Positions 25,970-59,780 of a DNA stretch of 64,000 nt are shown piece by piece; positions within the stretch are counted from its first letter, which is position 1; every line of letters begins with the position of its first letter. The notes beneath the pieces are model-generated. The model made no database searches. It was not told where the DNA came from and was given only the letters and a program-made list of their open reading frames with translations. A program made the position numbers and the translations under genes. The DNA lies in assembly GCA_001643675.2 (NCBI GenBank), contig LSRY02000031.1:682001-746000 (forward strand). The letters are read 5' to 3'. The DNA is from Monocercomonoides exilis PA203 (taxonomy: Eukaryota; Protista; Preaxostyla).

Positions 25970-28900
25970 ATGAGAATAGTTTTGTTCCTTTTTGCATGTT
26001 TGATTCTTGAGAAAACATTTGAATCACAAGATATCCGTGGAACAACCACATTTCAAAACAAAGGTATTCATTCGAATTGTTATTTTTTCAATCTTTTTCT
26101 TTATTCGGGTTCAGGCTATTCAAATGATGCACAATTTCAATCAAAGGACGATTACAATTACTTATTTGAACAGAAAACTTTGCCTAAAGCGAAAAGATTA
26201 CAGTCAGGAATCTCAACAGTGATTAATGCATTTTTTGGGTTCTCCAATTCTTCAATTGAACTCAAGAATTTGGCAATTGAACGTTCTTCCTCACAATTTT
26301 TGCTTATAACAGAAAAGTCGAGGATTATACTGGATTCCTGCATTTTACACCAAAATTATGTTTCACCGTTTCATCTTCAAAGTGGGTCAGTCTGTTTCAC
26401 AAACTTAAGTTTGATCATCCAAAAGAATCTTTGCCCTTCAAGCCTCATATTTTCATCTGATGATTCGAATTCTGCCATTTTAAGAGAATCCATGCTCTCA
26501 GACCTGATCGTTTCTTCTTCAGGTTATTTTCTGCTATCTGGAAAGAGCAGAATTGAACAGATAAATGGATGTGCCTTCAGAAATATGTCTGTGAAGACAT
26601 TCAAGAACATTGATGATCGAATGGAACATTCATGTTTTCGAAGTTCAATGGAGAACAACCTCATTTATTCGTGTGTGAATGTATTTGAAGGAGGGATCTC
26701 GAGTGGATCTTATTCTTCACACGAATTTGTCTGCAGAAACACGACAATAAGCAACGTGAAAAGAGAAAGAAATGTTCTTAAACCAGAAGAACAAAAGAAC
26801 ACAACAGAAAGTCAATCCTTTTCATTGTGTGAATGGGAAGATTGCACAGCCGAACAAGGAGGTGCTCTCTATGTTCATGACAATGAAAATGCGACTTTAA
26901 CTGTTGAAAATTGTTCGTTTTTAAGATGCAATGCTTCTTTAACAAGAGGAGGAGGAATATATGCCTTGAAAGTTGCTGAATGTACTGTGCTCCATTCAAC
27001 ATTCACCGAATGCACTGCAGCAGGAACAACAAATTACGGAGGAGGAGGAATTCAAAATGAACATGTTTATGTTCAATCACTTGTTGATGATTGTTCATTT
27101 TCAAATTGCTCGTCTGGAGAAGATGGAGGGGCAATTGATATGCGTCCGACAAAGACCGAAAAGCAAAAACCATGCATTATTAATTCCATTTTTATTAATT
27201 GCAGATGCAATTCTTCTAACTCTGGCACAGGCGGTGCAATTGAACATTGGGATTGCTTGGATCAAGTTATTGTCTCTAATTGTTTATTCTGCAATTGCAA
27301 TTCAATGTGTGGAGGAGGTGCTATTTCACAGTTAATAAATTCAGATAACAATGGGGTATTGTTATTTTACTGCTTTTTCCACAACAACACATGTGTAAAA
27401 GGTGGAAATGACGTTGCTCTCCACGACTCTTCTGAAAACAACATTGATTCAAGTTGCTACACAACAAGGAAAACCGAAAACAGAGTGACTACAAGTTACT
27501 ACTCTGTAATGGATAAAAGTGAATGGCTTCGAAATGAAGGTGGAAGAGTGAGATATGTTTCTTCAACTGATACAGAACCAAATTCCATTGACACATATGC
27601 ATGCGGGCTGAATGAAAGCTATCCATGCAGAACAATCAGCCATTGTCTCACTCAACTTATTCCAGACTTCGTGAAGGAAATAGAGATACTCACAGGTGCA
27701 ATCACAGAGGCAAAAAGTGTTGATTGTGGTGCAATTTCTTTCACAATATATGGCCAAGATGGTTTAAGCACAACAGTGCAGACAGAATTAGAGGCACCTG
27801 GCTTGTCTCTTTTTTCAATATCATCAGGTTCATTGACTCTCAGGGATTGTATTCTTGTGCATGATCTAACACGCTCAAATAATCGTGGGTCAAGGCTGTT
27901 TGAGATAAGTGGAGCAGGAAAAATACATATTAGAAGATTGAACATATCAACAGGAAGTGGGCAATCATCAGAAACAGCATTCACAACAGAACTGATAAAT
28001 ATTCAGAATGGTGTGCTTCAGATGGAAAATGTGAACTGGGCAAAGACGATTTCCACAAATTCATTGTTTTCGCTTTCTTCAACAAATGAGATTTCATTGG
28101 AACTTTCTGAGTGTACATTTGATGGGATTGAGAGAACAACGAGCGGAGCAGCAGTGATATCGTTTTCCAGTGACAAGGCAAGCATCGATTTGAATTCGAG
28201 CATATTTGCAGGATGCGGAAGCACAACATCAGCCAACGGAGGATCAGCGATGCTGAACGTTGGAGAAGCGAATGAAGTGAAAGTGAAAGGCGGGTCTTTT
28301 GACGGGTGTTTTTGCTCTGCATCGTACGGACTAGGTGGAGGAATTCTTCTTCAATTCTTGAATGAAAATCCTGACTTCCTGATCTCCTCTTCATTTGGAT
28401 CAAACACAGCCAAGTGGGGAAGAGATATCTTCGTCTTATCACCAAATCTGGAAACAGTTGCGCAATTCAGAAAAATATCATCAGTAAATGCATCGTTGGA
28501 TTCATTTGACAAAGTGCGAGGATATGACAACGGAAATACGAGCGTGGCCATTCCTCTGTGCATCTATCTCCTTCCCAATCCAACAGAAATATATGTGAGT
28601 AATTCCGAAGCATCAAACCATTCTCACTGTGGAATTGTCCAATTCCCTTGTTTGACCTTAAAGCATTCTCTTTCAAGGTTATCAGGAACAAAGAAAGTTG
28701 TTGTGAATGGAATGATTCAGATGAGCGATGAATTAGTTTTTGCTGAACAGAAGCATGAAATCCGAGGAAATGATGAACAGAGTGGTTGGACAGTCTCTGA
28801 TTCAAGTTCATCGTTAAACTCAGCGATAATTTCAGCAAGTGTTGAAACAGCCTTATCGATTCTTATCTTCTCTCTCCCATCTTCCCTTCCTCTTCACTCA

Positions 28901-31900: not shown

Positions 31901-34900
31901 TTTGCATTGAGAGGGAGAGATGTGTATGTGAGATGTCACTCAATCGAAAAGCAAATAGTTGATGAACAATTCTTGCTGGATTTCAGGGCACCATTTGTCA
32001 AGGAACTGGCAATGTGGGGATGCACAACAGACTCGTTTGAAGGAGAAGAGGATCTTTTATTGAGAGTGAAGATATTTCGGAGTGAAACGATATTTGTGTC
32101 AGCTGTTATTGACAACCATGAAGACAGCAGGGAGTGTGGTGTGTTTGAAGCGCCTTGCCGGTCATTGAGTGAAGGGATGCACCACATCATTCCATCACTG
32201 TTCTCACAGCTATTGATCTTGAGGCAAACGGAAATTGTTGGAAAATGTGCTGCACACGATGTGATAATCCGCTCCCTGGAAGCTCCTTCAACTGCCTTAG
32301 TATTTTTGAACTCAACAATTGTTGATGATAATGATGATGGAAGTCTTATCGCAGCCTCGGAGAATGTTCGGATTGAAAGATTGAAGTTCAACTTTGGCCA
32401 GTCGTTTTCATATTCAGGCAATTCTATCATTCATGAAGCAAATGGACAGCTTTCTCTTTCATATGTTGATTTCTCTTTTGTTGGAGAATCAGAAAACATT
32501 GAAGCTATTGTTCTCAATTCAACATTGTTGAGCATTGAAAAGGGGATTCTGCATGTTGATAACTGCACGATAACAATGCTTTCATTCAAGAAGCCTTCCT
32601 TTCTGTTGGGAGGAGATGAGATAAATATCAATAATGTGAGACTGGAAAAAGTTGAGGCAATTTCAAATGTGTTTGAGACTGGCAATTGTGGAAGAATTGT
32701 GTTGAATGGAATTGATGTTGATGGAGTGAAGCTGTCTGAAGGTTGCATCATTTCAATAAACAGTTCAACTTCAGGAACACTATCTGTTGGAAGCTCCTCA
32801 TTCAATAATTGTTCAAGAAAATCTGAAGGACCTTCTATTTTATCTGCTTTTACAACTTCGACAAAAATTATTCTTTCCAATTGCTCTTGCTCAAACTGCA
32901 ACTCTCAATCTGACAAAGGAAGTGCAATGGAAGCGAACAATGCGACGAATGTTCTCATGAACTTGTGTGAATTTGAAGGAATGGTTATGAAAGGAAGTGA
33001 AGATGATAATATGAATACAATAAAGGATATCTGTCTGTGGAATGGATCGCTTGTCCACTCAGAAAATGCTTCATTGATGATGAAGGATGTTTCAATTTCG
33101 AATTCTTCGTCAGGAGGATTATCAGTATCTTCCAGCAATGTGACTGTCGAAAAAGGAGAATTCCTTCACAATAATCCATTCATTGATAAATATCCCTCTC
33201 TTCGTCGAAATATTATTTGTTCTGATTCTGGAGCATTGAATGTTGTGAGTTTGAAAGGAGGAGATGGAGTGAAAGATAATTCTTCACTTTGGATTCTGAA
33301 TGAAGGATGCAATTTTGAGGGAATTATTTCCGAGAGGGCATCTCCATTCTTCATTCCAGTGCTGGAGAGTGTTGAAACAAAGGAAGAGGGAGAAGAAGTG
33401 GAGATTGTGTTCAAAGGGAAGGAGCTGCTGCCATGCGACTTGTCATTCATGGTTGTGAGGCAGATGGGAGAAGAAAAGCAGATTGAGAAGCATGAGTTTG
33501 ATGAAAGTGGATATGTGTCAGAGACCGAAGTTGAAGGAAGACAGCCAAAAGAGATGATAACGGAAGCAGGAGAAGAGGTGGAAGTGAGTGTGTGCATTCT
33601 GTTTGGAGAAGGAAATAATCCATCATCAACAGATTCTTTCATTCTGAAGAACAAGAGCGAATCAAAAACAAATGGAGAAGGAAAGCTTACTGAAGGAGGA
33701 AAAGAAGGGAAATCGTATTGGTTATTGATTGTTATTATCATGGCATTTGTTCTTCTAATCATTCTAATTGTGGCAGTGATATTGGCTGTTAGATGGAGGA
33801 GACAAAAGAGAAGAACAGAAGAATTGGAAGAGATTGTGAATGACACAGTGAAAAAGGATCCAAAGGCATTTGAGATGGTGACGATGGAGATGTCACCTGA
33901 AGAGCAATGGAGGAGAGCAGAGAGGGAAGCAGAGAAGAAGAATGAAGAGAGGATAAAGAAGAGGGTGTATGAGAAAAGCTTGGGACATTCAGAGTCATCG
34001 GAACATCTTCTTTCTGAGAGTGGCTCAACAGAATACATTCTTGGAAGAGATTCAGACAAGATTCCTGATTGGGCTCTTGAGAATGTTGAAGAAGAAGAGA
34101 TTCTAAAGAGATCACCTTCGCCTTCCATTTCATCCACTTCAACAACTGATTCAGATTCAACATTTGTCCGAGGGGAGGATCTGTGTCCGACCACCTCATC
34201 GATGTCAAACCTGGTGGATGCCATGGCCTGCTCGTCTCCTCATGAGAAGCTGATTGTGGATCTGAGGGATTCGCTGTTCATGCTGCTTCATGGAAGGAAT
34301 GCGAAGAAGGAGATGGCGATTGGCTCGTTGAAGGAGAGGGAGCAAACAGCAGCACAGGTGTTGTTCTGGGTGGCGAATGGAGCACTCCACTCGTTTGACG
34401 AGATGGAAAACCCACTTCAGTCATTGGCCAATCTGAGCCCACACATTGTTCTGTTCTCAGAACACATGGTGATCTGTATTGTGATGCACTCTGACTTATT
34501 GTCAGATGATGATTCAGATTCATCCTCCATCTCGTCATCAACAGTTGTGACATCTGCCAGTGATGGTGATGATGATGATGATGATGACTCCCTTCCCTCA
34601 TCAGCATTTGAAGAGGATGAGGATGCCTTCAGAAAGGAGTGCCTGAGGTGGAAGGCACCCGAGCTGCTGATGAACAAGAAGATGGGGGCGAGGAAGGAGT
34701 CGGTTGTGTTCTCGATTGGGATGATGTTGTGGGAGTGTGTGACGCTGGAGATCCCGTTTGGGGAGTATGAGGGAGTGGTGGCAGGGCAGAAGATAGTGAA
34801 AGGGGAGCGGCCGAAGGTGGAGAAGATGGGAGGGAGCAGTCTTCGGGAGTTGGAGGAGAAGTGTGTGGTGCAGGGGTGGGATGAGCGGGTGACATTGGGG

Positions 34901-35044
34901 GATGTGAAGCGGGAGCTGTTCATGAAGATGCCGATGGGGTCGATGTTTGTGACGGCATCAGACGCGTTGGACATTGGAGATGGATCGAGATGTGAAGAGG
35001 CAGACAGCGAAGACACAGATGGGAGCTTCAGTCGGATGGAATGA
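25970..35044 (+). CDS. Giant receptor-like protein A (3024 aa): signal peptide, five Cys-capped beta-helix-like modules, TM helix, cytoplasmic TKL-like pseudokinase C-lobe
   Basis: 9-kb ORF; GGA(L/I/V) repeats; module caps (Y/F)V...CG...PCx(T/S); TM WLLIVIIMAFVLLIILIVAVILAV-RWRR; LRWKAPEL...VVFSIGMMLWE...IPF...GERP. Possible in-frame 51-nt intron at 26064..26114. Confidence 0.9.
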   Translation: MRIVLFLFACLILEKTFESQDIRGTTTFQNKGIHSNCYFFNLFLYSGSGYSNDAQFQSKDDYNYLFEQKTLPKAKRLQSGISTVINAFFGFSNSSIELKNLAIERSSSQFLLITEKSRIILDSCILHQNYVSPFHLQSGSVCFTNLSLIIQKNLCPSSLIFSSDDSNSAILRESMLSDLIVSSSGYFLLSGKSRIEQINGCAFRNMSVKTFKNIDDRMEHSCFRSSMENNLIYSCVNVFEGGISSGSYSSHEFVCRNTTISNVKRERNVLKPEEQKNTTESQSFSLCEWEDCTAEQGGALYVHDNENATLTVENCSFLRCNASLTRGGGIYALKVAECTVLHSTFTECTAAGTTNYGGGGIQNEHVYVQSLVDDCSFSNCSSGEDGGAIDMRPTKTEKQKPCIINSIFINCRCNSSNSGTGGAIEHWDCLDQVIVSNCLFCNCNSMCGGGAISQLINSDNNGVLLFYCFFHNNTCVKGGNDVALHDSSENNIDSSCYTTRKTENRVTTSYYSVMDKSEWLRNEGGRVRYVSSTDTEPNSIDTYACGLNESYPCRTISHCLTQLIPDFVKEIEILTGAITEAKSVDCGAISFTIYGQDGLSTTVQTELEAPGLSLFSISSGSLTLRDCILVHDLTRSNNRGSRLFEISGAGKIHIRRLNISTGSGQSSETAFTTELINIQNGVLQMENVNWAKTISTNSLFSLSSTNEISLELSECTFDGIERTTSGAAVISFSSDKASIDLNSSIFAGCGSTTSANGGSAMLNVGEANEVKVKGGSFDGCFCSASYGLGGGILLQFLNENPDFLISSSFGSNTAKWGRDIFVLSPNLETVAQFRKISSVNASLDSFDKVRGYDNGNTSVAIPLCIYLLPNPTEIYVSNSEASNHSHCGIVQFPCLTLKHSLSRLSGTKKVVVNGMIQMSDELVFAEQKHEIRGNDEQSGWTVSDSSSSLNSAIISASVETALSILIFSLPSSLPLHSTFISSSSSLKLSQCSLSLQDPSFELELTFLSEESGILTIDTFLVSSVIFGGSPLISVSGGNTEAKLKRARLNEIETRCSSGLIEVKNKASLQMSDCVVSSVTPSERTTSSRLISSTSAKKIEIIRTDISNFAVKDKNGGAVECTLESGCSFVFEEGSMSSCKSEEGSGGGLWVQMKSGSSLSIGNVTESLSNNDFGNEEEKKACFSHCEATSSVDGRKGLGGGIYMCLDDGASDFVLKRVQFEGCSGRKGKDVFLEADDLSVVTNSETFCFDIDVNDFQKLNGFERSTTNEEFEIPLVVYLWNNFTTPCHVGGQETHDFSGCGHVQIPCNTITKAVGFRFSNKKKSIKLVSPFSFGEELKMETDEWSVIGEGNATNYGVAEGIAGAQRGLFETHIQTAFSEVVFSLEERIGTYECVFHCVSNKLTIRDCGIVGCENELSVSFVKVEGGEAVMNNLFGNAIRWQTSAIIAEGRSGGFSSVEIVESNFSGSGEQNGCLVESRNAKCLSLTKCKATSFVRSTGNGGSISVDNSNNENENTQINIEECDFDECSVLADGGRGGAVFVQMKKNTQVNINSCSFTGCVAPAGENKNGFGGGMVLKLIDGDPSFVISSPIFEEDKPNVARHGNDIFIESSNLTKSITNASLPFVSENMNDISLDSLRGFDGNDKENAIPLVYFWRGFDSTIFVGREGKDVCICGLSDYPCLSIDHSLDRLSKGNERMISIIEKAVLQKSVDLNGIWIKSEDTGECSLECLSSIEGAEEAVMKIRGITKFELINFVVPSSFSNEANVLMYIGSSEGLLTLKDCSFAKKEDDGEDAINFGLIKADGGKIVFDLVSVQFLCFSQDVVSVLSSACATIKNLTMKNVELEGASGLTISKNSSRESREKNEAEQDVVIEWSIFEEVNQNTTDDIPIIRNDGDEPLKMVMRNTTMKRCGGLKCGKGGAMFHALNEGGSFDCSFSTISECFCSTTGRGGWLFLECTSTAEQPLNFVLSNITFKDNFALRGRDVYVRCHSIEKQIVDEQFLLDFRAPFVKELAMWGCTTDSFEGEEDLLLRVKIFRSETIFVSAVIDNHEDSRECGVFEAPCRSLSEGMHHIIPSLFSQLLILRQTEIVGKCAAHDVIIRSLEAPSTALVFLNSTIVDDNDDGSLIAASENVRIERLKFNFGQSFSYSGNSIIHEANGQLSLSYVDFSFVGESENIEAIVLNSTLLSIEKGILHVDNCTITMLSFKKPSFLLGGDEININNVRLEKVEAISNVFETGNCGRIVLNGIDVDGVKLSEGCIISINSSTSGTLSVGSSSFNNCSRKSEGPSILSAFTTSTKIILSNCSCSNCNSQSDKGSAMEANNATNVLMNLCEFEGMVMKGSEDDNMNTIKDICLWNGSLVHSENASLMMKDVSISNSSSGGLSVSSSNVTVEKGEFLHNNPFIDKYPSLRRNIICSDSGALNVVSLKGGDGVKDNSSLWILNEGCNFEGIISERASPFFIPVLESVETKEEGEEVEIVFKGKELLPCDLSFMVVRQMGEEKQIEKHEFDESGYVSETEVEGRQPKEMITEAGEEVEVSVCILFGEGNNPSSTDSFILKNKSESKTNGEGKLTEGGKEGKSYWLLIVIIMAFVLLIILIVAVILAVRWRRQKRRTEELEEIVNDTVKKDPKAFEMVTMEMSPEEQWRRAEREAEKKNEERIKKRVYEKSLGHSESSEHLLSESGSTEYILGRDSDKIPDWALENVEEEEILKRSPSPSISSTSTTDSDSTFVRGEDLCPTTSSMSNLVDAMACSSPHEKLIVDLRDSLFMLLHGRNAKKEMAIGSLKEREQTAAQVLFWVANGALHSFDEMENPLQSLANLSPHIVLFSEHMVICIVMHSDLLSDDDSDSSSISSSTVVTSASDGDDDDDDDSLPSSAFEEDEDAFRKECLRWKAPELLMNKKMGARKESVVFSIGMMLWECVTLEIPFGEYEGVVAGQKIVKGERPKVEKMGGSSLRELEEKCVVQGWDERVTLGDVKRELFMKMPMGSMFVTASDALDIGDGSRCEEADSEDTDGSFSRME
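33170..34812 (+). repeat. About 1.64-kb conserved cassette; inverted repeat with 52245..53887
   Basis: From NNPFIDKYPSLRRNIICSDSG to VAGQKI..GERP the two genes are near-identical in protein and DNA; the flanks are divergent. Confidence 0.9.
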
Positions 35045-35619
35045 AACGCTGATTTTATTTATTTATTTATTTATTTTTTTCATTTGAGAAATGCATTTGA
35101 GAAGCCTGGGGAATTGAAAAGTGGAGATGGGAGAATGTTGGATGAGAAGAATTGAATGCTTGCTTGAAAGCAATTCCTTCCTTTGCTTGTGCCTCGTTGG
35201 GAAGAAAAGTGCATTGCCATATCAGATTCATGCTTTCGGGAGGGGATTGTCATTCGCTGCATTCTTCGTCCCGAGCCATGATGAGGCTTTCACTTTCTTC
35301 CTTTGGACAACTGGAGTTTTCCCAATCGGCACACACCTGGTGATTTCTGTTTCAAATTCAGCATCATTGGGATATTCTTTTTTCGTTCTCATTTGTCATT
35401 TTCAACAGTTTATTTTTCTTTCACACAGTGAGAATGCAGAATGGGAGGATGGCAGTCATCTCTGTTATCTGTTAGAAATTGAGTTTGATAAAAGGAAGAG
35501 TGAACAATGCATCATTCTCTTGTTTTTTGTTTGCGGAATTGTTTTGATAATCTTTTTTAACAATGATTATAAGTTGTTTTTATATTTTTATGTATGTTTG
35601 CTTGTATTTTTAAAATATA

Positions 35620-39822: not shown

Positions 39823-39843
39823 CCCCCCCCCCCCCCCCCCCCT
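39823..39843. repeat. Poly(C) tract, 21 nt
   Basis: Uninterrupted C run in very AT-rich intergenic DNA. Confidence 0.9.
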
Positions 39844-40462: not shown

Positions 40463-40499
<37 letters not shown>

Positions 40500-47562: not shown

Positions 47563-47576
47563 TGTCCTCGTAGGCG

Positions 47577-49107: not shown

Positions 49108-49150
<43 letters not shown>

Positions 49151-49975: not shown

Positions 49976-50372
49976 CAGTTTGCGCAAAGAATTCCGGATA
50001 TCGCACAAAATGCCGGACAAGATCGATATCTCAATAGCAGCAAGAGGAATAATTCTGACAAATTTCCTCAATAAATATCTCAACAATGCAAACTCAGTTG
50101 ATAAACGTGACTTTTAAAACAGCTTCATTTATGCTCAGAAATAAATAATTATTAAAATTTCGGAGAAATAGGATATTGAGTATCTCCGAAATTTCAAAAA
50201 TTGATATTTCTGAGCACAAATGAAGCTGTTTTGAAAGTCTCGTTTATCAATTGAGTTTGTATTGAAGAGATATATTTTGAGGAAATTTGACAGAATTTTT
50301 CTTTTTGCTGTAATTGAGATATAGATCTTGTCCGGTATTTTTTGCGATGTCTGGTATTTTTCGAACAAACTG
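49976..50372. mobile_element. Foldback MITE-like element, family 2 (arms about 190 bp, very short loop, TA|CAG terminus)
   Basis: CAGTTTGCGCAAAGAATTCCGGATATCGCACAAAATGCCGGACAAGATC... pairs with ...GATCTTGTCCGGTATTTTTTGCGATGTCTGGTATTTTTCGAACAAACTG; the left end is preceded by TA. Confidence 0.82.
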
Positions 50373-51024
50373 AACAACTGACCATCTTTTTTTTATTTCA
50401 TAAAAAATTCGAAAAACAATGTTTCCCATTTAAATCCATATTAAAACAGAATTGAAATAAACTTTATTTTTTAATAAAAGTTTGTTCTGAATTATCTTTT
50501 TTTTTTTTTTAACAATTAATAATAATTTATTGGGTTTTTGTTTTTGTTGTCGAACTTTTTTCAATCAAAAATTTCGCAATGAATATTTGGAAGGAATATT
50601 ATTTATACGATCACAATAAAGTGATTCATTATAAATTATTCAAATTCGAAATATAACAATTCGAATACGAAAAATAATTATTTGATTTTTTCTGAAAAAA
50701 TTGGGGGTGTTTTTTCCTCATCGTGATGATGGATTTCAAAAAATAAAGTTTTGTTTGGTGATAATTTTTGGAATCATAACTTTTTTCTGGGTGCTAATAA
50801 TTCAAAAATTTTGTTTCTTCGAAAAAAGAATAATTAATTAAAGTGAAAAATGCTTTATTACAGTTTTATAAATACTATTTCAGATAAGATTCATGAGAGA
50901 ATTATCGTTGAAAGGAGTTTTAACTTTTCAGTGTTCATTTTTCAGTTCTAAAAGTTTATTCACTTGCAGAGATTTTTTATTAAGAATATTTAAATCTCAA
51001 AAATTTTTATTCATATTATGTGAA

Positions 51025-51253
51025 ATTCTTTTCGAAAAGTCGTAATTGTTTGATTCAATTAATAATAAAAATTTGAATATCTTGATCTAATTTCTGTTCC
51101 TGCTCACGAATTTACACACTATTGTATGCAATAGCATTGGAAAGAAATAGATACCAAATTAATGAAGTTTCGAGAGCGTGAACAAAAATTTGATCAAAAT
51201 TTAATATTATTAAAATTTTTTCAATTAAACATTCACGACTTTTCAAAAAGAAT
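51025..51253. mobile_element. Foldback/MITE-like palindrome, family 1, copy 2
   Basis: CTTTTCGAAAAGTCGT...GATCTAATTTCTGTTCCTGCTCACGAATTT and GAAGTTTCGAGAGCGTGAACAAAAATTTGATC...ACGACTTTTCAAAAAG; same core and similar size as 7614..7838. Confidence 0.7.
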
Positions 51254-52001
51254 AACTAATATGTTCCAACAACTGAAATTGAAATTGCTGATAGAAAAAA
51301 GAAATGAGAAAAACAAATAACTGAATAACAATAATTCTGGTGAGGTGCATGAATATACACAAATAAGATGAATAAAATATAGACATAAAAACTTTCTAAT
51401 AAGAATAGAAAATCAAAGCTAAAACAAAGAGTGATGATAATAAAGATAATGTCTATTTCTACACAAAATTAAAACACTTTTTATATTAAACTGATTGTGA
51501 AAAATGATGAATATTTCAATATTTGTTACTGCACAAAGCAGTCGAAAACACAAAAGTCGGAGTTACAATAAAAAAAAACAAAATCACAGAAAATGAACTG
51601 ATACCGAGTGTGCATTTCCCCTTTGCTCAAACACTCGCTAAGTTAGCAAGTCGCTCCTCATGCAAAAACAAAGTGTCAGTCATTTTCCCTGAATCGATTA
51701 ATCTTTTCATTATTATTGAATGTTAGTCTTTCTGAAAGAAATATCTCAATTTGGCAGTTTGTTTTTTTTTTTTTGATTATTTGCCAATGAGGAATAAGTC
51801 TTTGTCTTTTCTGGCTTTTCATTTTTCATGTCCCATCCAATAATTCTCTTTGAAACAATTTCTTTATGCAAACTCTTGTGCTTTACAGCCAACTTCAATT
51901 TCCACTTCCTTTGTCCTTCTTTCTGCTTCACTTTCCTCATCTCCCAATTGTTGCTCTATTCATTCATCGTTCTCTTCCCTTTCTTGTTTTTTCCGCTGTT
52001 T

Positions 52002-55000
52002 TTATTCAATTTTCATATTTTCAGACTCGCCTTCCGTTCCAATTTCCTTGGATTCTCTTTCATTGCCTTTGCTCTCTTGCATCAGCCCCAATGCATCCGT
52101 CACTGTGAGCATCGCTGCTCCTGGAGGAAAGTTTCCAATCAGCTCTCTCTTCACATCTCCCAGTGATATGCGATCCTCACTTTCTGTCCGAGTGCACGCA
52201 ATGATCAATCCACCCAGATTGCTCCCTTCAGTCTTCAAAAAGTCTGGTCGCTCCCCATTCGCTATCTTCTGCCCTGCCACCACTCCCTCATACTCCCCAA
52301 ACGGGATCTCCAGCGTCACACACTCCCACACCATCATCCCAATCGAAAACACCACTGACTCCTTCGTCGCCCCCATCTTCTTGTTCATCTGCAGCTCTGG
52401 CGCCTTCCACCTCAGGCACTCCTTTCTGAAGGCATCCTCATCCTCTTCAAATGCTGATGAGGGAAGGGAGTCATCATCATCATCATCACCATTATCACTG
52501 GCAGATGTGACAACGGTTGATGATGAGATGGAGGATGAATCTGAATCATCATCTGACAATAAGTCAGAGTGCATCACAATACAGATCACCATGTGCTCTG
52601 AGAACAGAACAATGTGTGGGCTCAGATTATTCAATGACTGAAGTGGGTTTTCCATTTCATCAAACGAGTGGAGTGCCCCATTCGCCACCCAGAACAACAC
52701 CTGTGCAGCTGTTTGTTCTCTTTCTTTCAACGAGCCAATCGCCATCTCCTTCTTCGCATTCCTTCCATGCAACAGCATGAATAGTGAATCCCTCAGATCC
52801 ACAATCAGCTTCTCATGAGGAGATGAGCATGCCATGGCATCCACCAGGTTTGACATTGATGAGGTGGTTGGACACAAATCCTCCCCTCGAACAAATGTTG
52901 AATCTGAATCAGTTGTTGAAGTGGATGAAATGGAAGGCGATGGTGATCTCTTTCGAATCTCTTCTTCTTCAACCTTCTCAAGAGCCCAATCAGGAATCTT
53001 GTCTGAATCTCTTCCAAGAATGTATTCTGTTGAGCCACTCTCAGAAAGAAGATGTTCCGATGACTCTGAGTGTCCCAAGCTTTTTTCATAAACTCTCTTC
53101 TTTATCCTCTCTTCATTCTTCTTCTCTGCCTCCCTCTCTGCTCTCCTCCACTGCTCCTCAGGTGACATCTCCATCGTCACCATCTCAAATGCCTTTGGAT
53201 CCTTTTTCACTGTGTCATTCACAATCTCTTCCAATTCTTCTGTTCTTCTCTTTTGTCTCCTCCATCTAACAGCCAATATCACTGCCACAATTAGAATAAT
53301 CAATAATATCACAATAAGCACAATAACAATCAACAACAAATACGATTTCCCTTCTTTTCCTCCTTCAGCAAGTTTTTCTTCTCCATTTGTTTTTGATTCG
53401 CTCTTGTTCTTCAGAATGAATGAATCAGTGGATGATGGATTATTTCCATCCCCAAACAGAATGCACACACTCACTTCCACCCCTTCTCCTGCTTCTGTTA
53501 TCATCTCTTTTGGCAGTCTCCCTTCAACTTCGATCTCTGACACACATCCACTTTCATCAAACTCATATTTTTCAATCTGCTTTTCTTCTCCAATCTGCTT
53601 CACAACCATGAATGACAAGTCGCATGGCAGCAGCTCCTTCCCTTTGAACACAATCTCCACTTCTTCTCCCACTTCCTTTGCTTCAACACACTCCAACACT
53701 GGAACGAAGAATGGAGATGACCTCTCGGAAATAATTCCCTCAAAATTGCATCCTTCATTCAGAATCCAAAGTGAAGAATTATCTTTAACCCCATCTCCTC
53801 CTTTCAAACTCATCACATTCAATGTTCCAGAATCTGAGCAAATAATGTTTCGACGAAGAGAGGGATATTTATCAATAAATGGATTGTTGTTCTCAAATCT
53901 TCCATCTTTGATAATTATTGTGCCTCCACTCACACTCAACCCTCCCTTCGATGAGTTGCAAATCGTGGTGTCTCTCACAACTGCTTCACTCTTCGACAAG
54001 TCAACAATTGACCCATTCCATTTGCAAACTTCATCAGCAACTCCATTCCCTTCTGTTCCTGTTTCCAGATTCCCCTCAAACACGCACAAATCGATTAACA
54101 TTTTGTTTGCATTTGTTATCGTTACCTGGCTCCCCTTTGATGATTCTGATGTGCACTCATGAAAAGAGCAGTTGCACATCTCAAATCCACTCATCGGCTG
54201 ACTTGTGCAAACAATGCAAGACCCATCACTCGATCGGCTGATGTTTCTGAATGAAGACAACACCAATGACAAAACGAGTGATGAGTGGATGTTTTCAAGT
54301 GAGATCAGGCTTCTCTCTTCCAACTCAATATTTGTGGCTGCAAGCTTCGAAACACTCACTTTCTCACTTTTCCCACATTCAATCAACGAACTCTTGCATT
54401 CCACATCATCCACTCCCACATCCTCAAATGTTACCCTTTCTGAATGCAATATCATGAACACAGGCTTCGAGAATTTCAAGTGGCCAATACTGCACTTTTC
54501 TGCCTCAAACAACCCTTCTTCAACAACAATCAGAGAAAATTCAAAAATGGTCTGTGTATTTTCTGCTGTTCTGCTCTCTGACAAGAATGAAACAGATTCC
54601 AGAATGAGAGATCCATTCAGCTGGTGTATCAAGCACGAGCAGACAACATTCCCCATTCCACCAAAAACAAATGATACCTTCTCAATTCGAACAGATTCCG
54701 AGGTTCTCACAGCTCCCTCATTCCCAACCTCAATCTCTCTCACTTTTATCTCCCCATTCCTGCTCGCCTCCATCGACTTGATCGTCACCTTCTCAGCTGA
54801 ACACGAACCAGTCAATTCTGTTTCATTCCAAACAAACAGCTGCGAATAATCCGATGGGATGATGTGGCTCACCCCAACATTCAGCGATGAGCATGTGCTC
54901 TTCATCTCCCCACACTGCTTGCTGTCGCTGCTGTTCTCCACAATCGATGAAACAAATATGAATTCGCTCCTGAACACAAACACCCTCCTCAGAAGATCCT

Positions 55001-58000
55001 CTTCATCCCCATAATTGTCTGCTGTGCACCCCCATATCGCCAGCTCCCTCACAAATGGCTCCCCAAAATTTATCAGGAACTGTGACTCACTTATCTGCGA
55101 GTCAAGATCTGTGCACTTCACAAACACATCTCTCCCCTTCGATGCAACATTCTGAAGGAATGTGATGTTCGACAGCACAAATGGCAAAGTCTTCTGTGAG
55201 ACACTCTGTGATTTCAAAAACAGTCCTCCACCTCTCCCAATATTCGAGCAGAAACACCCTGTCACATTTGTGTGATTCACTTCCAGTCTCCCCCTCTCAT
55301 TGAGAAGGAAAAACACCCCTCCTCCTTCATTCGAGCTTGTCGATCCACAATTGTCAATCGTTGAATTCTCCATTCTCAATCTCACTTCATTTGAAATATC
55401 ACAACAAAGCAATGAGGGGTTGCTTGACACATTGTGCTTCACATTCACAAATGTGCATTGTTCAAATAGAATATTCCATATTTCTCCTTCATTATCATTC
55501 CCAATTCCAGGAATCACACTTTCACTCATCGCAATTGCACTTTTCCCACTCAATGAAATATCTTCAAATGTCACGTTGTTTATGGTTGTCACGCAACCAG
55601 CTGATATGCTCATTATCTCATGCATCGTTGAGAATCCAGCTATTTCTGTCTTTTCAATCGAAACAATTCCTTTCAATGCACCGATCAGCACAAATGACAC
55701 TTCACTTTCAGCATTGCCAATTGTGTGAATTGAGCATCCAATAACACTCGTTTTGATTGCTTCTGATCCTGCTTGGATAAGGATGTTTGCTCCGTTGTCA
55801 AAGGCACTGGGAAACAGAATCCCCAATTCACTGAATTGAGCATCCCCTTTGCACTCAACAGAAGCATCCCCATTCCCTTCAATTGTTTGAGCAAATTGGA
55901 TTTTGTCTGATTCCATATTTGTTCCTTCCACCTTCATCCCATTCATCTCAATCACACTCCTCACATCACAAATCCCATGAACTGCAATTGATTCAATCCC
56001 CAAACTTCTCCCTCGCTTCACCCCATAATCAACAGATCTGCATGGATACTCCAACAACCCACACACAACCACATTGTTTCCTTCCTCTGCAATATACACA
56101 CTCGATCCAACAGATTTCCAGAAATAGATCAACGGGATTGCACACTCCTTGTTTTCTCCATCATATCCTCTCATCGAGTCTTCTGTCAGCAACTCCAGTC
56201 TGTCTTTCACAAATGGAAGTGTTTCGTTCTTGATGCTCTTGGCAAGCGATGGAGATGAAATGAACAGATCCTTCCCATATTTCGCATTGTTTGGCTTCCC
56301 AGATGAAAAAACTGGTGAGGATATCACAAACCCTGCTTTTCCTTCTTCTTCTTCTTTCAGCATTTTCAGCATTATTCCTCCTCCATATCCAACACTTCCC
56401 TCTTCATTTGGTGCTGTGCAACAATAAAACGAACACAAATTTATCAAAAGATTCGTTTTCGAAGATGCCTCACAAAAGAGTGCACCTCCTCCAATCTCAG
56501 TTCCCTCCTCTCCAGTAATAGCACACCCTTCAAATGTGCAGTCATTTATTTTCACTTTGAAATCTCTTCCATCATCATTGTCATCATCCTTGTTCGATAC
56601 GCTTATGCATCCTCCACTTCCCCGTGAACGAGTAATCGATGAAAATGTGCATCCTGATATCTTCTCTATAATCCCTTCGTGGCACTCAACAACACACCCG
56701 TCTCCAAATGTGACCACTCCAAAATTGCTTTTCGTCATATTCATCGAAGGCACACTTTCTGCATTCCCTTCAACAACAAATATCGATGAATCTCCAATTT
56801 TCATATTCTCTGATCCAAACTCACTCACCTCCACAACCCCTCCAACAGCCTTCACAAACACTGTCGAAACAGTCTCAACGCCTCCTTCCATCCCACATTT
56901 GTTCAGTGTGAGCTTCCCTGAATGGCACTCAAACACACTTTCATGAAAGGTCAGCGATTTCTTCAAAGAGAAGATAACTCCAGTCACAGACACAGAAACT
57001 GTGTTTTCAATCAATCCACTTTGAGCTCCCTCTTTCTGATCACAAACATCACACTTCATCTCATTCGCTTTGGATGCAATGCTCCATTCATGTGAAGTCA
57101 ACTCCAATTCCTCCTCAAAGCCAAATGGCTCAAGAAGAGCAACATCCTTTTTCTTCCCTTCAAAATGGATTGTGGCTGCCTTCCAAATGGATGAACACGG
57201 AAACTCTTCAAATCCACACTTCGAGAAATCATGGCTCAGTGATCCTCCTCCCACAAACGCTGGTGCTGAAAAGTTGTTCCACAAATAGACACACAGCGGA
57301 ATAGGGAACGATTCATCCCCATTTTCATATCCTTGCATCTTGCTCTTTGTTTCCAATGAAGCTGTCAATGAAGTGATCTTCTCACTTGTTGCAGTTGATT
57401 CCAGATCGATTGAGTCAACAAAAATGTCACTTCCCCATCTGGCCCTGTTCCCTTCAAATCCTGATGAAATCAGAAAGTCTGCACTTATGTCTTTCACTTT
57501 CAGCCCAATTCCTCCTCCTCTGCCTTGTGTGGCTGAGGCATAACAGTTCTTCACAATGCCTCCATTCATCTTCAATGAACCAATATTCCCCATTTCAGCC
57601 ATCATTCCCCCTCCAAACTCACAGTCTTCATTCCCACAGCCATCAATCGTGCATCCATCAAGAGTTATCGAATGTGACCCTTCACTCACACTCATCAGCG
57701 ATGATCCTGCTGTTGTTCTCACAATGTTGCTGAACACACAGTTATTTAAAGAAAATATAACTGAGGATTCTTGAGGCAGAGATATCACACTCGTGGTGCT
57801 GAATGTTTGTCCCCATTTCACATCTTGCATCTTCAACTCTCCCCCTTCCACATTCACAAGTGAGTTCTGAATGCTCCTCTCTTCCGAATGAGCTGAATCC
57901 ATCGATATGTTCATTCGCTTCACATCCATCAACCCACTTCCCTCAACCTCAAACAGTCTGCATTGCCTGTTGCTTTCATATGAGGTGTTGTGGATCACAG

Positions 58001-59780
58001 ATAGATCGCTCACAGCCAACTCCCCTGTTCCAACACAAAACAGACTCAATCCATTCGCCTCAAATTTCGTTTCAATGGCTGAACCAGCTGGCGAAGCCCC
58101 ATTCACAGTGATCGTTTTCTCCCCAACATCAACTCCTTTGCCTTCCACAACTGTTCCACTCAACACCTTGATTTCCTCCACAAACCCCACAATCATTTGG
58201 GAAAGGCAATGACTAATGGTCAAACATGCACAACTTTCATTCAATCCACAGCTGAATGTGTTTTTTGCATTTGTCTGATTCTCCTTCGAAGCAACAAATC
58301 TGCTTCTTCCTCCTTCATTTGGAAGCCAATCGCTTTTATCTCCACCTGCATAATACCTAACCCCTTCAGTTCTTGAAGAATAACAGAAAGCAACTTGGGA
58401 GTCTGTGCTATTGTCCTCAAAATTAATATCATTTCCATACGGAGCTGTATTATTGTGGAAAAAGCAAAACCACAAAAGATTTCCATTAAAACCATTTGTC
58501 AGAATACTGACTGCTCCTCCACGTAAATCTGAATGACATCCTTGAAAAAGGCAATTATGAGCAACAATTTTATCTGTTGCAGTCCAACTTATATAGCCTC
58601 CTCCATCAGAATCCCCTGGCTTATTTCCGCTGCAATTTTGGAAAAAGCAATTCAATACACAATCTTTTGTTTTGTTTGTTTTTGAACTTAAAATCATCAA
58701 TCCTCCAGCATCATTTCCAGACCATCCATCTTTGAACAAACAGTTTTCAAAAAGAACTTGAATTGCCATTCCTTCGATTTCTGCCCCTGCACCTCCAAAA
58801 TTTGTTGATGCTACACAATAACACTCAACAAATGTGGAATGTTTCACAGTGCATTCTGCAATATTCAAAGCAAATATCCCCCCTCCTCTTGTGGATGTGG
58901 CATTGCATTTCACAAATGACGAATTCTCAACAGTCAGTGTTGCACTCGAATTGTCATGAACATACAGCGCTCCGCCACATGAAGCATTGCACCCAATCCA
59001 TTCAGCATTCGTAAATGTCTGTGTCACAGTGGTTTCAACCCTTTCTGTATTTCTCATTTTCCGATTCACTCTTTCATTCTGAACAAATGTGCAATTGTTG
59101 CAGGTGAATGAACCAGATCCTTCTGTTCCGCTCACAATCCCTCTTTCAAGAACATTCATCGATCGTTCAACATTACAATCCTCCATTTTGCTCATCCTCA
59201 TCATCATCTCTTTTTCAGTTTGTATTTCCTCTGTCTCACAATATTTCTTTGTGATATTCGCAAATTTGCAGTTTTGAATGAATTCAAAACTTCCTGAACC
59301 ATCTCTCAGAAAACTGCCTCCACTCCCACAAAACACAACATCCTCAAACTCACTATTTCTCACAAACAACGAAGGCAAATCACCCCCTTCCATCTTCACC
59401 ACACTCCCCATCATTCCACATTCCTGACCATTCCCAACTCTCAAAGTCGTGTTTATCAGCCAGCATGTCCCTCCGTTCCTCACATAATTCCCATTCCACT
59501 CGTTTTTTCTCACAAACACACTTCCCTCAACCTGCAGCAACGATCCTGCTCTTATTTCAATCATCACACAATTATCTGGCTTTTCAAGCAACATCCCTTT
59601 CATTTCAACTGATGAGTTGTGCATTTCGCAGAACATTTGAACAACACTTCCCCTTTCCAAAATTCCACTCTTCTCCATTCCACGAACATGGAAAGAATCA
59701 TATTCATTACTCAATCTGTCGTTTCTATCTATGCCACAAATGGCTGACAACAAACACACAAGATAAACGAAGAGAATCAT
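52002..59780 (-). CDS. Giant receptor-like protein B (2592 aa): signal peptide, four Cys-capped beta-helix-like modules, TM helix, cytoplasmic TKL-like pseudokinase C-lobe
   Basis: 7.8-kb ORF; signal MILFVYLVCLLSAICG; same architecture as 25970..35044; TM LLLIVIVLIVILLIILIVAVILAV-RWRR; LRWKAPEL. Confidence 0.9.
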   Translation of the reverse strand: MILFVYLVCLLSAICGIDRNDRLSNEYDSFHVRGMEKSGILERGSVVQMFCEMHNSSVEMKGMLLEKPDNCVMIEIRAGSLLQVEGSVFVRKNEWNGNYVRNGGTCWLINTTLRVGNGQECGMMGSVVKMEGGDLPSLFVRNSEFEDVVFCGSGGSFLRDGSGSFEFIQNCKFANITKKYCETEEIQTEKEMMMRMSKMEDCNVERSMNVLERGIVSGTEGSGSFTCNNCTFVQNERVNRKMRNTERVETTVTQTFTNAEWIGCNASCGGALYVHDNSSATLTVENSSFVKCNATSTRGGGIFALNIAECTVKHSTFVECYCVASTNFGGAGAEIEGMAIQVLFENCLFKDGWSGNDAGGLMILSSKTNKTKDCVLNCFFQNCSGNKPGDSDGGGYISWTATDKIVAHNCLFQGCHSDLRGGAVSILTNGFNGNLLWFCFFHNNTAPYGNDINFEDNSTDSQVAFCYSSRTEGVRYYAGGDKSDWLPNEGGRSRFVASKENQTNAKNTFSCGLNESCACLTISHCLSQMIVGFVEEIKVLSGTVVEGKGVDVGEKTITVNGASPAGSAIETKFEANGLSLFCVGTGELAVSDLSVIHNTSYESNRQCRLFEVEGSGLMDVKRMNISMDSAHSEERSIQNSLVNVEGGELKMQDVKWGQTFSTTSVISLPQESSVIFSLNNCVFSNIVRTTAGSSLMSVSEGSHSITLDGCTIDGCGNEDCEFGGGMMAEMGNIGSLKMNGGIVKNCYASATQGRGGGIGLKVKDISADFLISSGFEGNRARWGSDIFVDSIDLESTATSEKITSLTASLETKSKMQGYENGDESFPIPLCVYLWNNFSAPAFVGGGSLSHDFSKCGFEEFPCSSIWKAATIHFEGKKKDVALLEPFGFEEELELTSHEWSIASKANEMKCDVCDQKEGAQSGLIENTVSVSVTGVIFSLKKSLTFHESVFECHSGKLTLNKCGMEGGVETVSTVFVKAVGGVVEVSEFGSENMKIGDSSIFVVEGNAESVPSMNMTKSNFGVVTFGDGCVVECHEGIIEKISGCTFSSITRSRGSGGCISVSNKDDDNDDGRDFKVKINDCTFEGCAITGEEGTEIGGGALFCEASSKTNLLINLCSFYCCTAPNEEGSVGYGGGIMLKMLKEEEEGKAGFVISSPVFSSGKPNNAKYGKDLFISSPSLAKSIKNETLPFVKDRLELLTEDSMRGYDGENKECAIPLIYFWKSVGSSVYIAEEGNNVVVCGLLEYPCRSVDYGVKRGRSLGIESIAVHGICDVRSVIEMNGMKVEGTNMESDKIQFAQTIEGNGDASVECKGDAQFSELGILFPSAFDNGANILIQAGSEAIKTSVIGCSIHTIGNAESEVSFVLIGALKGIVSIEKTEIAGFSTMHEIMSISAGCVTTINNVTFEDISLSGKSAIAMSESVIPGIGNDNEGEIWNILFEQCTFVNVKHNVSSNPSLLCCDISNEVRLRMENSTIDNCGSTSSNEGGGVFFLLNERGRLEVNHTNVTGCFCSNIGRGGGLFLKSQSVSQKTLPFVLSNITFLQNVASKGRDVFVKCTDLDSQISESQFLINFGEPFVRELAIWGCTADNYGDEEDLLRRVFVFRSEFIFVSSIVENSSDSKQCGEMKSTCSSLNVGVSHIIPSDYSQLFVWNETELTGSCSAEKVTIKSMEASRNGEIKVREIEVGNEGAVRTSESVRIEKVSFVFGGMGNVVCSCLIHQLNGSLILESVSFLSESRTAENTQTIFEFSLIVVEEGLFEAEKCSIGHLKFSKPVFMILHSERVTFEDVGVDDVECKSSLIECGKSEKVSVSKLAATNIELEERSLISLENIHSSLVLSLVLSSFRNISRSSDGSCIVCTSQPMSGFEMCNCSFHECTSESSKGSQVTITNANKMLIDLCVFEGNLETGTEGNGVADEVCKWNGSIVDLSKSEAVVRDTTICNSSKGGLSVSGGTIIIKDGRFENNNPFIDKYPSLRRNIICSDSGTLNVMSLKGGDGVKDNSSLWILNEGCNFEGIISERSSPFFVPVLECVEAKEVGEEVEIVFKGKELLPCDLSFMVVKQIGEEKQIEKYEFDESGCVSEIEVEGRLPKEMITEAGEGVEVSVCILFGDGNNPSSTDSFILKNKSESKTNGEEKLAEGGKEGKSYLLLIVIVLIVILLIILIVAVILAVRWRRQKRRTEELEEIVNDTVKKDPKAFEMVTMEMSPEEQWRRAEREAEKKNEERIKKRVYEKSLGHSESSEHLLSESGSTEYILGRDSDKIPDWALEKVEEEEIRKRSPSPSISSTSTTDSDSTFVRGEDLCPTTSSMSNLVDAMACSSPHEKLIVDLRDSLFMLLHGRNAKKEMAIGSLKEREQTAAQVLFWVANGALHSFDEMENPLQSLNNLSPHIVLFSEHMVICIVMHSDLLSDDDSDSSSISSSTVVTSASDNGDDDDDDSLPSSAFEEDEDAFRKECLRWKAPELQMNKKMGATKESVVFSIGMMVWECVTLEIPFGEYEGVVAGQKIANGERPDFLKTEGSNLGGLIIACTRTESEDRISLGDVKRELIGNFPPGAAMLTVTDALGLMQESKGNERESKEIGTEGESENMKIE
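52245..53887 (-). repeat. Second copy of the 1.64-kb conserved cassette
   Basis: Reverse complement is near-identical to 33170..34812. Confidence 0.9.

Follow-up and report, generated by a model that had tools for sequence, protein, structure and literature searches.

Two intact genes of the same family, A and B, lie within a stretch of 64,000 nt of the Monocercomonoides exilis genome (the window), and they raise the question of why their ectodomains have diverged extensively, whereas a middle segment of 1.6 kb is shared between them even at synonymous sites. Gene A encodes a giant, receptor-like protein, which has a signal-like N-terminus, a predicted beta-helix ectodomain, one membrane span and a putative kinase-remnant tail, and the proteins matched in its family are named MONOS_ proteins of M. 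exilis. The two genes are convergent, with a stop-to-stop distance of ~17 kb and a PEPCK gene in between; both are complete and are surrounded by ordinary genes. Their parts, in positions of the window, are as follows.

25970 to 35044, plus strand: gene A, intact, 3,024 codons (ORF list and translation).
25970 to 33169, plus strand: ectodomain of A, lineage X (genome matches and tree of the upstream 1.5 kb).
33170 to 34813, plus strand: A copy of the shared block (blastn, ungapped alignment and AF2).
33761 to 33900, plus strand, in A and 53297 to 53158 in B: longest identical run of A and B, 140 nt (pairwise comparison).
34814 to 35514, plus strand: tail module of A, type 1, the last 76 codons plus ~470 nt of 3' flank.
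52002 to 59780, minus strand: gene B, intact, 2,592 codons (ORF list and translation).
53889 to 59780, minus strand: ectodomain of B, lineage Y (genome matches and upstream tree).
53806 to 53886, minus strand: A-type patch of ~80 nt at the 5' edge of the B block (alignment and nearest-neighbour scan; converted from alignment positions and approximate to a few nt).
52245 to 53888, minus strand: B copy of the shared block (blastn and ungapped alignment).
51250 to 52244, minus strand: tail module of B, type 2, the last 80 codons plus ~750 nt of 3' flank (low end approximate).

When A is compared with B by blastn, a single high-identity segment is detected (A nt 7199-8873, 93.4%). The block from NNPFIDKYPS to GERP is 1,644 nt long in both genes, aligns without gaps and is 93.7% identical (1,541/1,644); the coordinates given for it in the original prediction are right to within 1 nt. 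That prediction had also described the block as near-identical in DNA, synonymous sites included. The synonymous sites are indeed shared (dS about 0.2), but 103 differences make the term near-identical an overstatement. When dS is calculated by the method of Nei and Gojobori in windows of 100 codons, it is 0.16-0.29 in the block, and 1.3 to saturated over the whole ectodomain and the final ~65 codons, indicating that the block is not as saturated as the ectodomain. The ectodomains, expected to be moderately similar over roughly 2000-2400 aa, are 46% identical in amino acid sequence across 2,333 columns. Among 32 copies of the block (496 pairs), the dS of the A/B block (0.20) is the lowest, except for that of two near-identical inverted duplicates. 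Twenty-one of the 103 differences fall within the 100 nt that code for the membrane span, and this divergent segment is directly followed by the 140-nt run without differences, which is a candidate for the latest exchange between A and B. The run-length permutation test for A and B gives p <= 0.001, and a nearest-neighbour scan identifies A and B as mutually nearest copies at about +630 to +900 of the block.

Both edges of the block are sharp, as had been claimed. Identity in 90 nt rises from 59% to 91% across ~90 nt at the 5' edge; at the 3' edge it drops from 97% to 52%, so that the renewed divergence at the C-terminal end is also recovered. The position of the 5' edge is, however, peculiar to B. 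The 5' patch of the B block has the sequence of A and of copy L003, from which other lineage-Y copies (L004-L007 and L013) differ at ~20 sites. In the nearest-neighbour scan, L003 and A are the copies closest to B at +33 to +108, and other B-type copies switch 45-85 nt deeper than NNPFIDKYPS. The boundary between A and B lies exactly at NNPFIDKYPS because B carries this A-type patch. Recombination signals or repeats were searched for at both edges of the block, and the search gave short matches at chance level alone.

The block encodes the last turns of the beta-helix, a beta-sandwich stalk of ~100 aa, the membrane span (about 33719-33790 in A) and, on the cytoplasmic side, a highly conserved region with Ser/Asp tracts and a kinase C-lobe up to GERP. 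In the AF2 model of the block, residues 62-165 form beta strands (pLDDT 72-84) and residues 183-230 a helix; the model of block plus tail is poor overall (pLDDT 48.9), and only the beta-sandwich of the stalk and the membrane helix were taken from it. The Pfam kinase profile PF07714 is matched at 26.6 and 28.4 bits, above the cut-off of 23.1, over profile positions 164-258 of 258. Likewise, a profile of 101 sequences matches PDB kinases only over the stretch that begins near the APE motif and ends at helix I, and nothing N-terminal of the APE motif is aligned either by Pfam or by this profile. A kinase N-lobe and the catalytic motifs (Gly loop, VAIK Lys, HRD and DFG) were tested for and were not found, and the residues at the position of the catalytic loop, as judged by eye in the translation, are not HRD or DFG. 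As read from the sequence, the cytoplasmic part is a half-kinase remnant. The AF2 model of the 500 aa preceding the block in A is of high quality (pLDDT 91.8, pTM 0.85). When it was compared with the PDB by Foldseek, the top 23 matches were all beta-helix enzymes (E down to 5e-5), and the top matches were right-handed parallel beta-helix proteins throughout, with tailspikes further down the list; the TM-scores are low (0.2-0.4). The ectodomain is accordingly predicted to be a right-handed parallel beta-helix. No ectodomain match to Pfam, such as the Chlamydia Pmp repeat, is found at E <= 0.1 in A or B.

The family comprises at least 595 proteins at E <= 0.001 and is the largest in M. exilis, and the block is present in the genome in at least 40 copies at 78-93%. 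The analyses at the DNA level cover 32-38 of these at least 595 copies, picked as the best matches to the block of A; DNA trees and dS are based on the block copies with their 1.5-kb flanks, and similarities of full-length ectodomains are taken from match tables. The ectodomains reach about 3,500 aa in the family. Median amino acid identity is 74% in the core, against 29% in the 500 aa upstream and 32% in the tail, and long invariant runs are present in the block protein throughout the family, so that the constant core with variable parts proposed for A and B holds family-wide. The ectodomains form two deep clades, X and Y, each with copies from both contigs studied, C27, which carries A and B, and C9. 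The only close relative of the ectodomain of A is located on the same contig (C27:853253-860442, 91% over full length), and its next-best matches (72-77%) are on other contigs. In the tree of the upstream 1.5 kb, A and L003 are joined with eight C9 copies and L039 (100/100). The ectodomain of B is not unique: C27 carries about 13 other copies that match it at 88-92% identity over the full length.

The tail behaves as a further module. Tail and 3' flank occur as discrete types (~76-80 codons plus 0.5-0.75 kb) that reassort with the ectodomain lineages. The type 1 tail of A is unrelated to the tail of B and is common to A, L003, L005, L006 and L013 on C27 and to L039 on contig C64 (92-100%), so that it is also present in lineage-Y neighbours. 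The type 2 tail is common to B, L004, L007, L009, L010 and L015 (88-90%). Family-wide, 22 upstream types and 63 tail types are distinguished, and four quartets contain all four combinations.

Block and ectodomain trees conflict among the 32 copies. The block tree groups the C27 copies (99/99) and 12 of the 13 C9 copies (97/96). The AU test rejects monophyly of C27 on the upstream data (p = 1.9e-96) and monophyly of lineage X on the block data (p = 1.6e-7); the groups were chosen after the trees were inspected, and the lnL differences are about 670. The dS of the block is set by the contig regardless of lineage (median about 0.5 within and about 0.85 between contigs), whereas dS of the upstream region is set by the lineage (0.25-0.64 within and about 1.9 between lineages). 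Within one lineage on one contig, dS of the block (0.48) exceeds that of the ectodomain (0.25), and the block is therefore homogenised only in comparison with the old lineages, not in absolute terms. Block dS increases with distance along the contig both in C27 (Spearman 0.51, Mantel p = 0.0015) and in C9 (Spearman 0.76, p = 0.001), whereas upstream dS in C27 shows no such rise. At the protein level, contig labels change 53 times in the block tree and 65 times in the upstream tree of 109 copies, against about 90 times when shuffled; the direction agrees with the DNA data, but the difference is small, since local duplication makes both parts cluster.

Recombination is also detected within the block. 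In the PHI test, none of 500 permutations attains the observed value in the C27 block, the C9 block or the Y upstream region. In the run-length test, 42 of 78 C27 pairs are significant at p <= 0.01, against 0.8 expected, and the tracts have a median of about 90 nt and a maximum of about 360 nt. The pair L028/L040 represents the reverse of the A/B pattern. This inverted duplicate shows no difference across at least 2 kb of upstream sequence or in the tail (flank dS 0), but its block dS is 0.27; all of its 139 differences are located within +499 to +1334, in a replaced zone of about 840 nt, sub-patches of which match L030, L018, L029 and L016 at 98-100%. Breakpoints are scattered over the block according to the nearest-neighbour scan, the alignment and L028/L040. 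GC3, examined for a signature of GC-biased conversion and unpolarised here, is 0.44-0.49 in the block, 0.38-0.49 upstream and 0.66-0.70 in the type 1 tail, and dN/dS of the block is about 0.13-0.15. The block is pieced together from tracts of 50-360 nt that stem from many donors, and is not one exchanged cassette. The idea of a cassette exchanged as a unit is thus abandoned, since the tracts are short and the edges mark the end of homology between lineages.

The similarity of A and B is most probably explained by concerted evolution through gene conversion in the shared core of two old ectodomain lineages. A and B would derive from two anciently separated lineages, X and Y, on one chromosome, between which the middle 1.6 kb would be the sole part alike enough for pairing. 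Ectopic conversion and crossing-over would act in this part because only this part can pair in all lineages. The exchange would depend on homology and occur mainly between chromosomal neighbours, and the block is held in a chromosome-wide pool structured by distance, as is observed in the dS of C27 and C9. A single event transfers a short tract of tens to a few hundred nt, as the run-length tracts show. The edges of the block would be sharp because tracts cannot enter the diverged ectodomain and tail, where they would stop. The observed reassortment of ectodomain lineages with tail-plus-3'-flank modules would result from crossovers within the block. The amino acid conservation of the block throughout the family is ascribed to purifying selection on the protein, and the extra synonymous similarity of neighbours such as A and B to conversion.

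It is unlikely that the ectodomain, instead of the block, is the newcomer, with X segments copied from another chromosome or from an archive of fragments onto a resident C27 gene whose block is local. Several observations would fit such an import: C27 contains only two X-lineage genes but about 14 of lineage Y; when copies on different contigs are compared, ectodomains of one lineage (dS 0.64) have diverged less than the blocks (0.85); and the upstream region of A is mosaic, some of its windows reaching 95% identity to C9 copies. The data also fit duplication of the gene to C27 and subsequent patching by its neighbours. An import would require a tract of 7 kb or more, but the tracts observed are 50-840 nt long, and the tail module of A is shared with Y-lineage neighbours. 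Import of the ectodomain and conversion of the block are not exclusive, and recombination is involved in both.

A programmed or somatic system resembling antigenic variation, in which the block serves as a recombination handle that places ectodomains and tails on an expressed copy so that each cell displays one or a few receptors, is very unlikely. Two observations agree with it: the family of variable surface proteins is very large and keeps its membrane and cytoplasmic part constant, and patchwise exchange is pervasive. However, every exchange detected is already fixed in the assembly, the majority being old (block dS 0.2-0.5; about 0-0.04 for the youngest module), A and B are complete genes among ordinary ones, neither edge of the block is marked by a repeat or signal motif, and the scattered breakpoints have no fixed site. 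The exchange has the appearance of ordinary evolution in the germline and not of a programmed switch, and no sign of somatic switching, exclusive expression or an immune-like function is present in these genomic data.

Purifying selection alone, including synonymous constraint from codon usage, RNA structure or an antisense gene and involving no exchange of DNA, is highly improbable. The strong conservation of the block protein and the long antisense ORFs that overlap the block in both genes would agree with it, but block dS between contigs is about 0.85 at unchanged protein conservation. The synonymous sites of the block are therefore free to change, and this value rules out synonymous constraint or the antisense ORFs as the cause. 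Similarity of the block follows contig and physical distance, not lineage, and constraint produces neither mosaic runs nor the L028/L040 patch. The original preference for recombination over purifying selection alone is thus sustained by between-contig dS, conflicting trees, PHI and run lengths. A collapsed or chimeric nanopore-based assembly of a repeated 1.6-kb element can be dismissed almost entirely: the family overlaps the RepeatModeler 'unclassified repeats' of the published assembly in the available passages of PMC8767320 and the block is multicopy, but A and B differ at 103 sites, both ORFs are open through the junctions, the read N50 given in those passages (8.9 kb) far exceeds the block, and collapse is rejected since diverged paralogues show the same lineage-block-tail arrangement (L003 for A, 91-95%; L004, L007, L009, L010 and L015 for B).

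Within the preferred account of concerted evolution by conversion, a bolder extension is conceivable but doubtful: the core of the block may be maintained partly as a universal recombination handle, by which at least ~20 ectodomain lineages are combined with ~60 tail-plus-3'-flank modules, in the germline or even clonally or somatically. If so, this would be a three-module system of receptor diversification in a gut commensal with a free-living-like way of life, exposed to bacteria instead of antibodies.

Families with comparable organisation exist in other protists. The var/PfEMP1 proteins of Plasmodium falciparum have a variable ectodomain and a conserved segment of membrane span and cytoplasmic part, and frequent ectopic recombination generates mosaic genes. 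The M. exilis family shares these three properties. The var genes, however, have two exons, are largely subtelomeric and are expressed in a mutually exclusive manner in a parasite under antibody pressure, whereas the M. exilis genes are single ORFs that lie amid housekeeping genes in the genome of a gut commensal. In Giardia, likewise a metamonad, the VSPs too are a large family, in which the ectodomain varies and the C-terminal membrane span and tail are conserved. They are small and Cys-rich, have a cytoplasmic tail of five residues and are expressed one at a time, whereas the M. exilis proteins have predicted beta-helix ectodomains of 2,000-2,400 aa and a conserved cytoplasmic domain of ~420 residues. 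The transmembrane kinases of Entamoeba histolytica and the TKL kinases of Trichomonas vaginalis are expansions of single-pass proteins with a variable ectodomain and a kinase-type cytoplasmic domain, and T. vaginalis also has expanded beta-helix/Pmp-like surface proteins (Pmp/BspA-like). Unlike in these families, only the kinase C-lobe past APE is detectable in M. exilis, and the ectodomain is probably a chain of parallel beta-helix domains without a Pfam match.

Conversion between loci that is limited to a domain is described for vertebrate receptors, namely TLR1/TLR6 (PMC2077338), CEACAM (PMC7042247) and Siglec-11/16 (PMC5701461). According to the available parts of these papers, part of a receptor gene is converted between linked paralogues while the remainder diverges, with sharp similarity boundaries and conflicting trees, as in A and B. 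On the same basis, these families range in size from a few to tens of members, against at least 595 proteins in M. exilis. There, conversion affects the core made up of the membrane and cytoplasmic parts, chromosome and distance determine the structure of the pool, and tail plus 3' flank form a third module that reassorts. The available passages of PMC6759080 and PMC8767320 present a 'protein tyrosine kinase' family (332 predicted, 320 TKL) as the largest of M. exilis, and describe its overlap with 'unclassified repeats'; it consists of the same genes as the A/B family. The TKL expansion of T. vaginalis is mentioned in those of PMC6759080. The terms 'gene conversion', 'paralog', 'transmembrane' and 'surface protein' do not occur in these passages of the two papers, nor does an analysis of family architecture or recombination.

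Interlocus gene conversion is already well known as a mode of gene-family evolution. M. exilis is the first known eukaryote without mitochondria, and its largest family has been published, in the passages available, merely as a count of 'tyrosine kinases'. The A/B locus reveals how this family evolves: the ectodomain lineages stay separate, the core is mixed among neighbours by short conversion tracts, and the C-terminal tail with its 3' flank reassorts independently as a third module. Trees built from the kinase-like part of the family reflect chromosome neighbourhood, not gene ancestry, and short-read mapping and repeat-masking will mishandle its genes. The invariant cytoplasmic core suggests, at the level of sequence, that these receptors may have a common intracellular partner.

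The window contains two giant receptor-like genes, A and B, in convergent orientation. They share a single segment of high identity (1,675 nt at 93.4% by blastn). The block within it, from NNPFIDKYPS to GERP, is 1,644 nt long in both genes and 93.7% identical without gaps.

Features of the window (ORF, open reading frame)
34-3792, forward strand: ORF of 1,252 codons, reaching the window start
9448-10113, forward strand: 221-codon ORF carrying part of a DDE_1 transposase domain (E 1e-8, profile positions 74-157 of 177)
10786-13947, reverse strand: ORF of 1,053 codons
25970-35044, forward strand: gene A, intact ORF of 3,024 codons
33170-34813, forward strand: block in A (pairwise alignment)
33166-34224, reverse strand: ORF antisense to A
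34417-35016, reverse strand: ORF antisense to A
42437-44692, forward strand: GTP-type phosphoenolpyruvate carboxykinase (PEPCK) gene (PEPCK_N, E 1e-70; PEPCK_GTP, E 5e-116)
52002-59780, reverse strand: gene B, intact ORF of 2,592 codons
53888-52245, reverse strand: block in B (pairwise alignment)
51850-52641, forward strand: ORF antisense to B
53212-54162, forward strand: ORF antisense to B

The original prediction located this block to within 1 nt, and its observation that A and B are similar in the block and diverged on either side is correct. The dS value between A and B (Nei-Gojobori, 100-codon windows of the codon alignment) is 0.16-0.29 within the block, and ranges from 1.3 to saturation outside it, the last ~65 codons included. 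The mismatches are unevenly spread along the block. The membrane-span codons are a local divergence hotspot with 21 mismatches in 100 nt (A 33670-33770; B 53290-53390), and the longest mismatch-free run (140 nt) begins directly after them. B is without ~430 aa present in A. The PEPCK gene lies between A and B, indicating that the receptors are interspersed with housekeeping genes and do not form a dedicated array. The 221-codon ORF probably represents the remains of a DNA transposon of the pogo/Tigger type. The antisense ORFs (199-352 codons) overlap the block and probably result from the purine-rich composition of the sense strand (GC skew ~+0.3). The 1,252- and 1,053-codon ORFs give no Pfam match at E <= 0.001.

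A protein search with the block region of A detects 595 proteins at E <= 0.001, and the best 120 of these, 70-93% identical to the query, are M. exilis MONOS_ proteins without exception. In the genome papers this family figures only as the largest of M. exilis, "protein tyrosine kinases" with 332 predicted members, 320 of them TKL (PMC6759080; PMC8767320), and as overlapping unclassified repeats (PMC8767320). Gene conversion, paralogues, transmembrane and surface proteins are not mentioned in the passages of these papers searched (PMC6759080; PMC8767320). The Pfam match in A and B covers no more of the kinase model than its C-terminal 95 positions, and a 101-sequence profile matches solved kinases in the PDB only from the APE motif to helix I; neither search detects a kinase N-lobe or catalytic motifs. 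The cytoplasmic kinase part is therefore a C-lobe remnant. The 500 residues preceding the block give a confident AlphaFold model (pLDDT 91.8), the best PDB matches of which are all right-handed parallel beta-helix proteins. The block itself is modelled poorly (pLDDT 48.9), but a membrane-adjacent beta-sandwich of ~100 residues and a long membrane helix can be recognised. From these models and the kinase matches, the block edges appear to cut through the last beta-helix turns and the kinase C-lobe, both folded, instead of coinciding with domain borders.

At least 40 scored copies of the block are present among 1,192 first-look candidates genome-wide, and the DNA-level analyses cover 32-38 copies picked by similarity to the block of A. 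Block identity to A is 85-93% for copies on C27, the contig of the window, ~80% on contig C9, and 78-80% elsewhere. The reading frame is open in most copies over 500 codons upstream, on the ectodomain side, and ~620-630 codons downstream, with an interruption in five. Six of 38 copies (L014, L022, L023, L024, L026, L046) have an in-frame stop or frame break in the upstream 500 codons or the block, and could be pseudogenes or contain introns or residual nanopore errors. The full ectodomain of A has a sole close relative, L003 (C27:853253-860442, 91%), all others being at most 77% identical and on other contigs; A and L003 represent a separate, old ectodomain lineage. The full ectodomain of B has ~13 C27 relatives at 88-92%, which makes B an ordinary member of a local group amplified recently. 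Relatives of the A ectodomain on C1, C7, C19, C20, C55 and C61 align as two pieces (~nt 12-3108 and 4481-7193) separated in the target by only ~70 nt. These relatives are missing ~1.4 kb of A, so that one ectodomain module varies in presence between copies. Inverted pairs with a spacing of 7-27 kb are common: L020/L021 (C9:1472-1493 kb), L011/L012 (C27:296-315 kb), L028/L040 (C9:790-819 kb), L013/L014 and L022/L023. Within each pair the sequence differs little or not at all over at least 3.7 kb (dS 0-0.01). A and B likewise form an inverted pair, though of different lineages.

When the upstream 500 codons, the block and the tail following GERP are compared in 32 copies, the block flanks fall into discrete types that reassort between copies. 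A and L003 have upstream type X, and B and 11 further C27 copies have type Y. Tail type 1 occurs in A, L003, L005, L006 and L013 on C27 and in L039 on C64 (dS 0-0.04), and tail type 2 in B, L004, L007, L009, L010 and L015. L005, L006 and L013 therefore pair the ectodomain lineage of B with the tail of A. Similarity within a tail type continues past the stop codon for ~470 nt (type 1) or ~750 nt (type 2) and then ends abruptly; the reassorting module is the tail plus 3' flank. GC3 of tail type 1 (A 34814-35044 and the other five loci) is 0.66-0.70, as compared to 0.46 for tail type 2 and 0.38-0.49 for the rest of the genes. Identity across the six copies on two contigs is ~98% in tail type 1, as against 91-96% in the adjoining block and 3' flank. 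Recent spread of this tail as a module, or GC-biased conversion, may explain this. Among 118 proteins family-wide, median pairwise identity is 74% in the block, 29% in the upstream 500 aa and 32% in the tail. These proteins have 22 upstream and 63 tail types, and all four combinations are seen in four type quartets, one including the upstream types of A and B. The shared block is unlikely to reflect assembly error, since diverged paralogues show the same arrangements and the ORFs remain open.

Comparison of cassette and ectodomain trees, proposed in the original prediction along with recombination tests, reveals conflict: the block groups by contig and the upstream region by lineage. The upstream tree has two deep clades (branches ~0.6), each with C27 and C9 copies. 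The block tree unites all 14 C27 copies (99/99) and 12 of 13 C9 copies (97/96). Enforced C27 monophyly lowers the likelihood of the upstream data by 676 lnL units (AU p = 1.9e-96), and enforced lineage-X monophyly that of the block data by 669 (AU p = 1.6e-7), for groups named only after the trees were seen. At the protein level, the block tree has 53 changes of contig label and the upstream tree 65, as compared to ~90 for shuffled labels; the direction agrees with the DNA result, but the contrast is modest.

Median dS by category
Block, same contig: ~0.5
Block, different contigs, any lineage: ~0.85
Upstream, same lineage: 0.25-0.64
Upstream, different lineages: ~1.9

These medians indicate that block similarity tracks location. 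Synonymous constraint as its cause is excluded by the same medians (block ~0.85 between contigs). Block dS increases with distance along the contig (Spearman 0.51, p = 0.0015 for C27; 0.76, p = 0.001 for C9), and C27 upstream dS shows no rise with physical distance. Within one lineage and one contig, block dS (0.48) exceeds ectodomain dS (0.25), as the donor pool of the block is wider. PHI is significant for the C27 block, the C9 block and the Y ectodomains (0/500 permutations each). A GENECONV-style run-length test is significant at p <= 0.01 in 42 of 78 C27 pairs, against 0.8 expected, with a median minimum tract length of ~90 nt and a maximum of ~360 nt.

L028 and L040, an inverted duplicate on C9, show no differences in the 1.5 kb preceding the block, in its first 498 nt or in the tail. 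All 139 differences lie within +499 to +1334 of the block. In successive windows of this zone L028 matches L030 (99-100%), L018 (100%) and L029 (98%), and L040 matches L016 (99%). These donor-specific patches indicate that a very young duplicate received sequence from several donors in its block core. The membrane span also lies inside the replaced zone.

In nearest-neighbour scans through the block, the copy closest to A or B switches at intervals of 100-300 nt; A and B are mutual best matches at ~+630 to +900. At the 5' edge, B carries A/L003 sequence from ~+5 to +85, where L004-L007 and L013 retain ~20 Y-type differences; L008 and L015 switch at ~+45 to +57. The crisp NNPFIDKYPS boundary is therefore specific to B, owing to the A-type patch that it received, and the boundary with A in other Y copies lies up to 85 nt further into the block. 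Past GERP, at the 3' edge, divergence among all tail types sets in within a few nt. No repeats or signal motifs mark either edge when both are searched.

The gene conversion originally inferred is thus well supported by the conflicting trees, PHI, the run-length test and the L028/L040 patches. The proposal of one constant cassette with interchangeable ectodomains holds as a first approximation only. Nothing in these sequences demonstrates a system of programmed switching. The block core is a chromosome-wide pool, structured by distance and mixed through short tracts. The block edges would be the limits of homology between old lineages, and recombination within the core would reassort ectodomain lineages and tail-plus-3'-flank modules.
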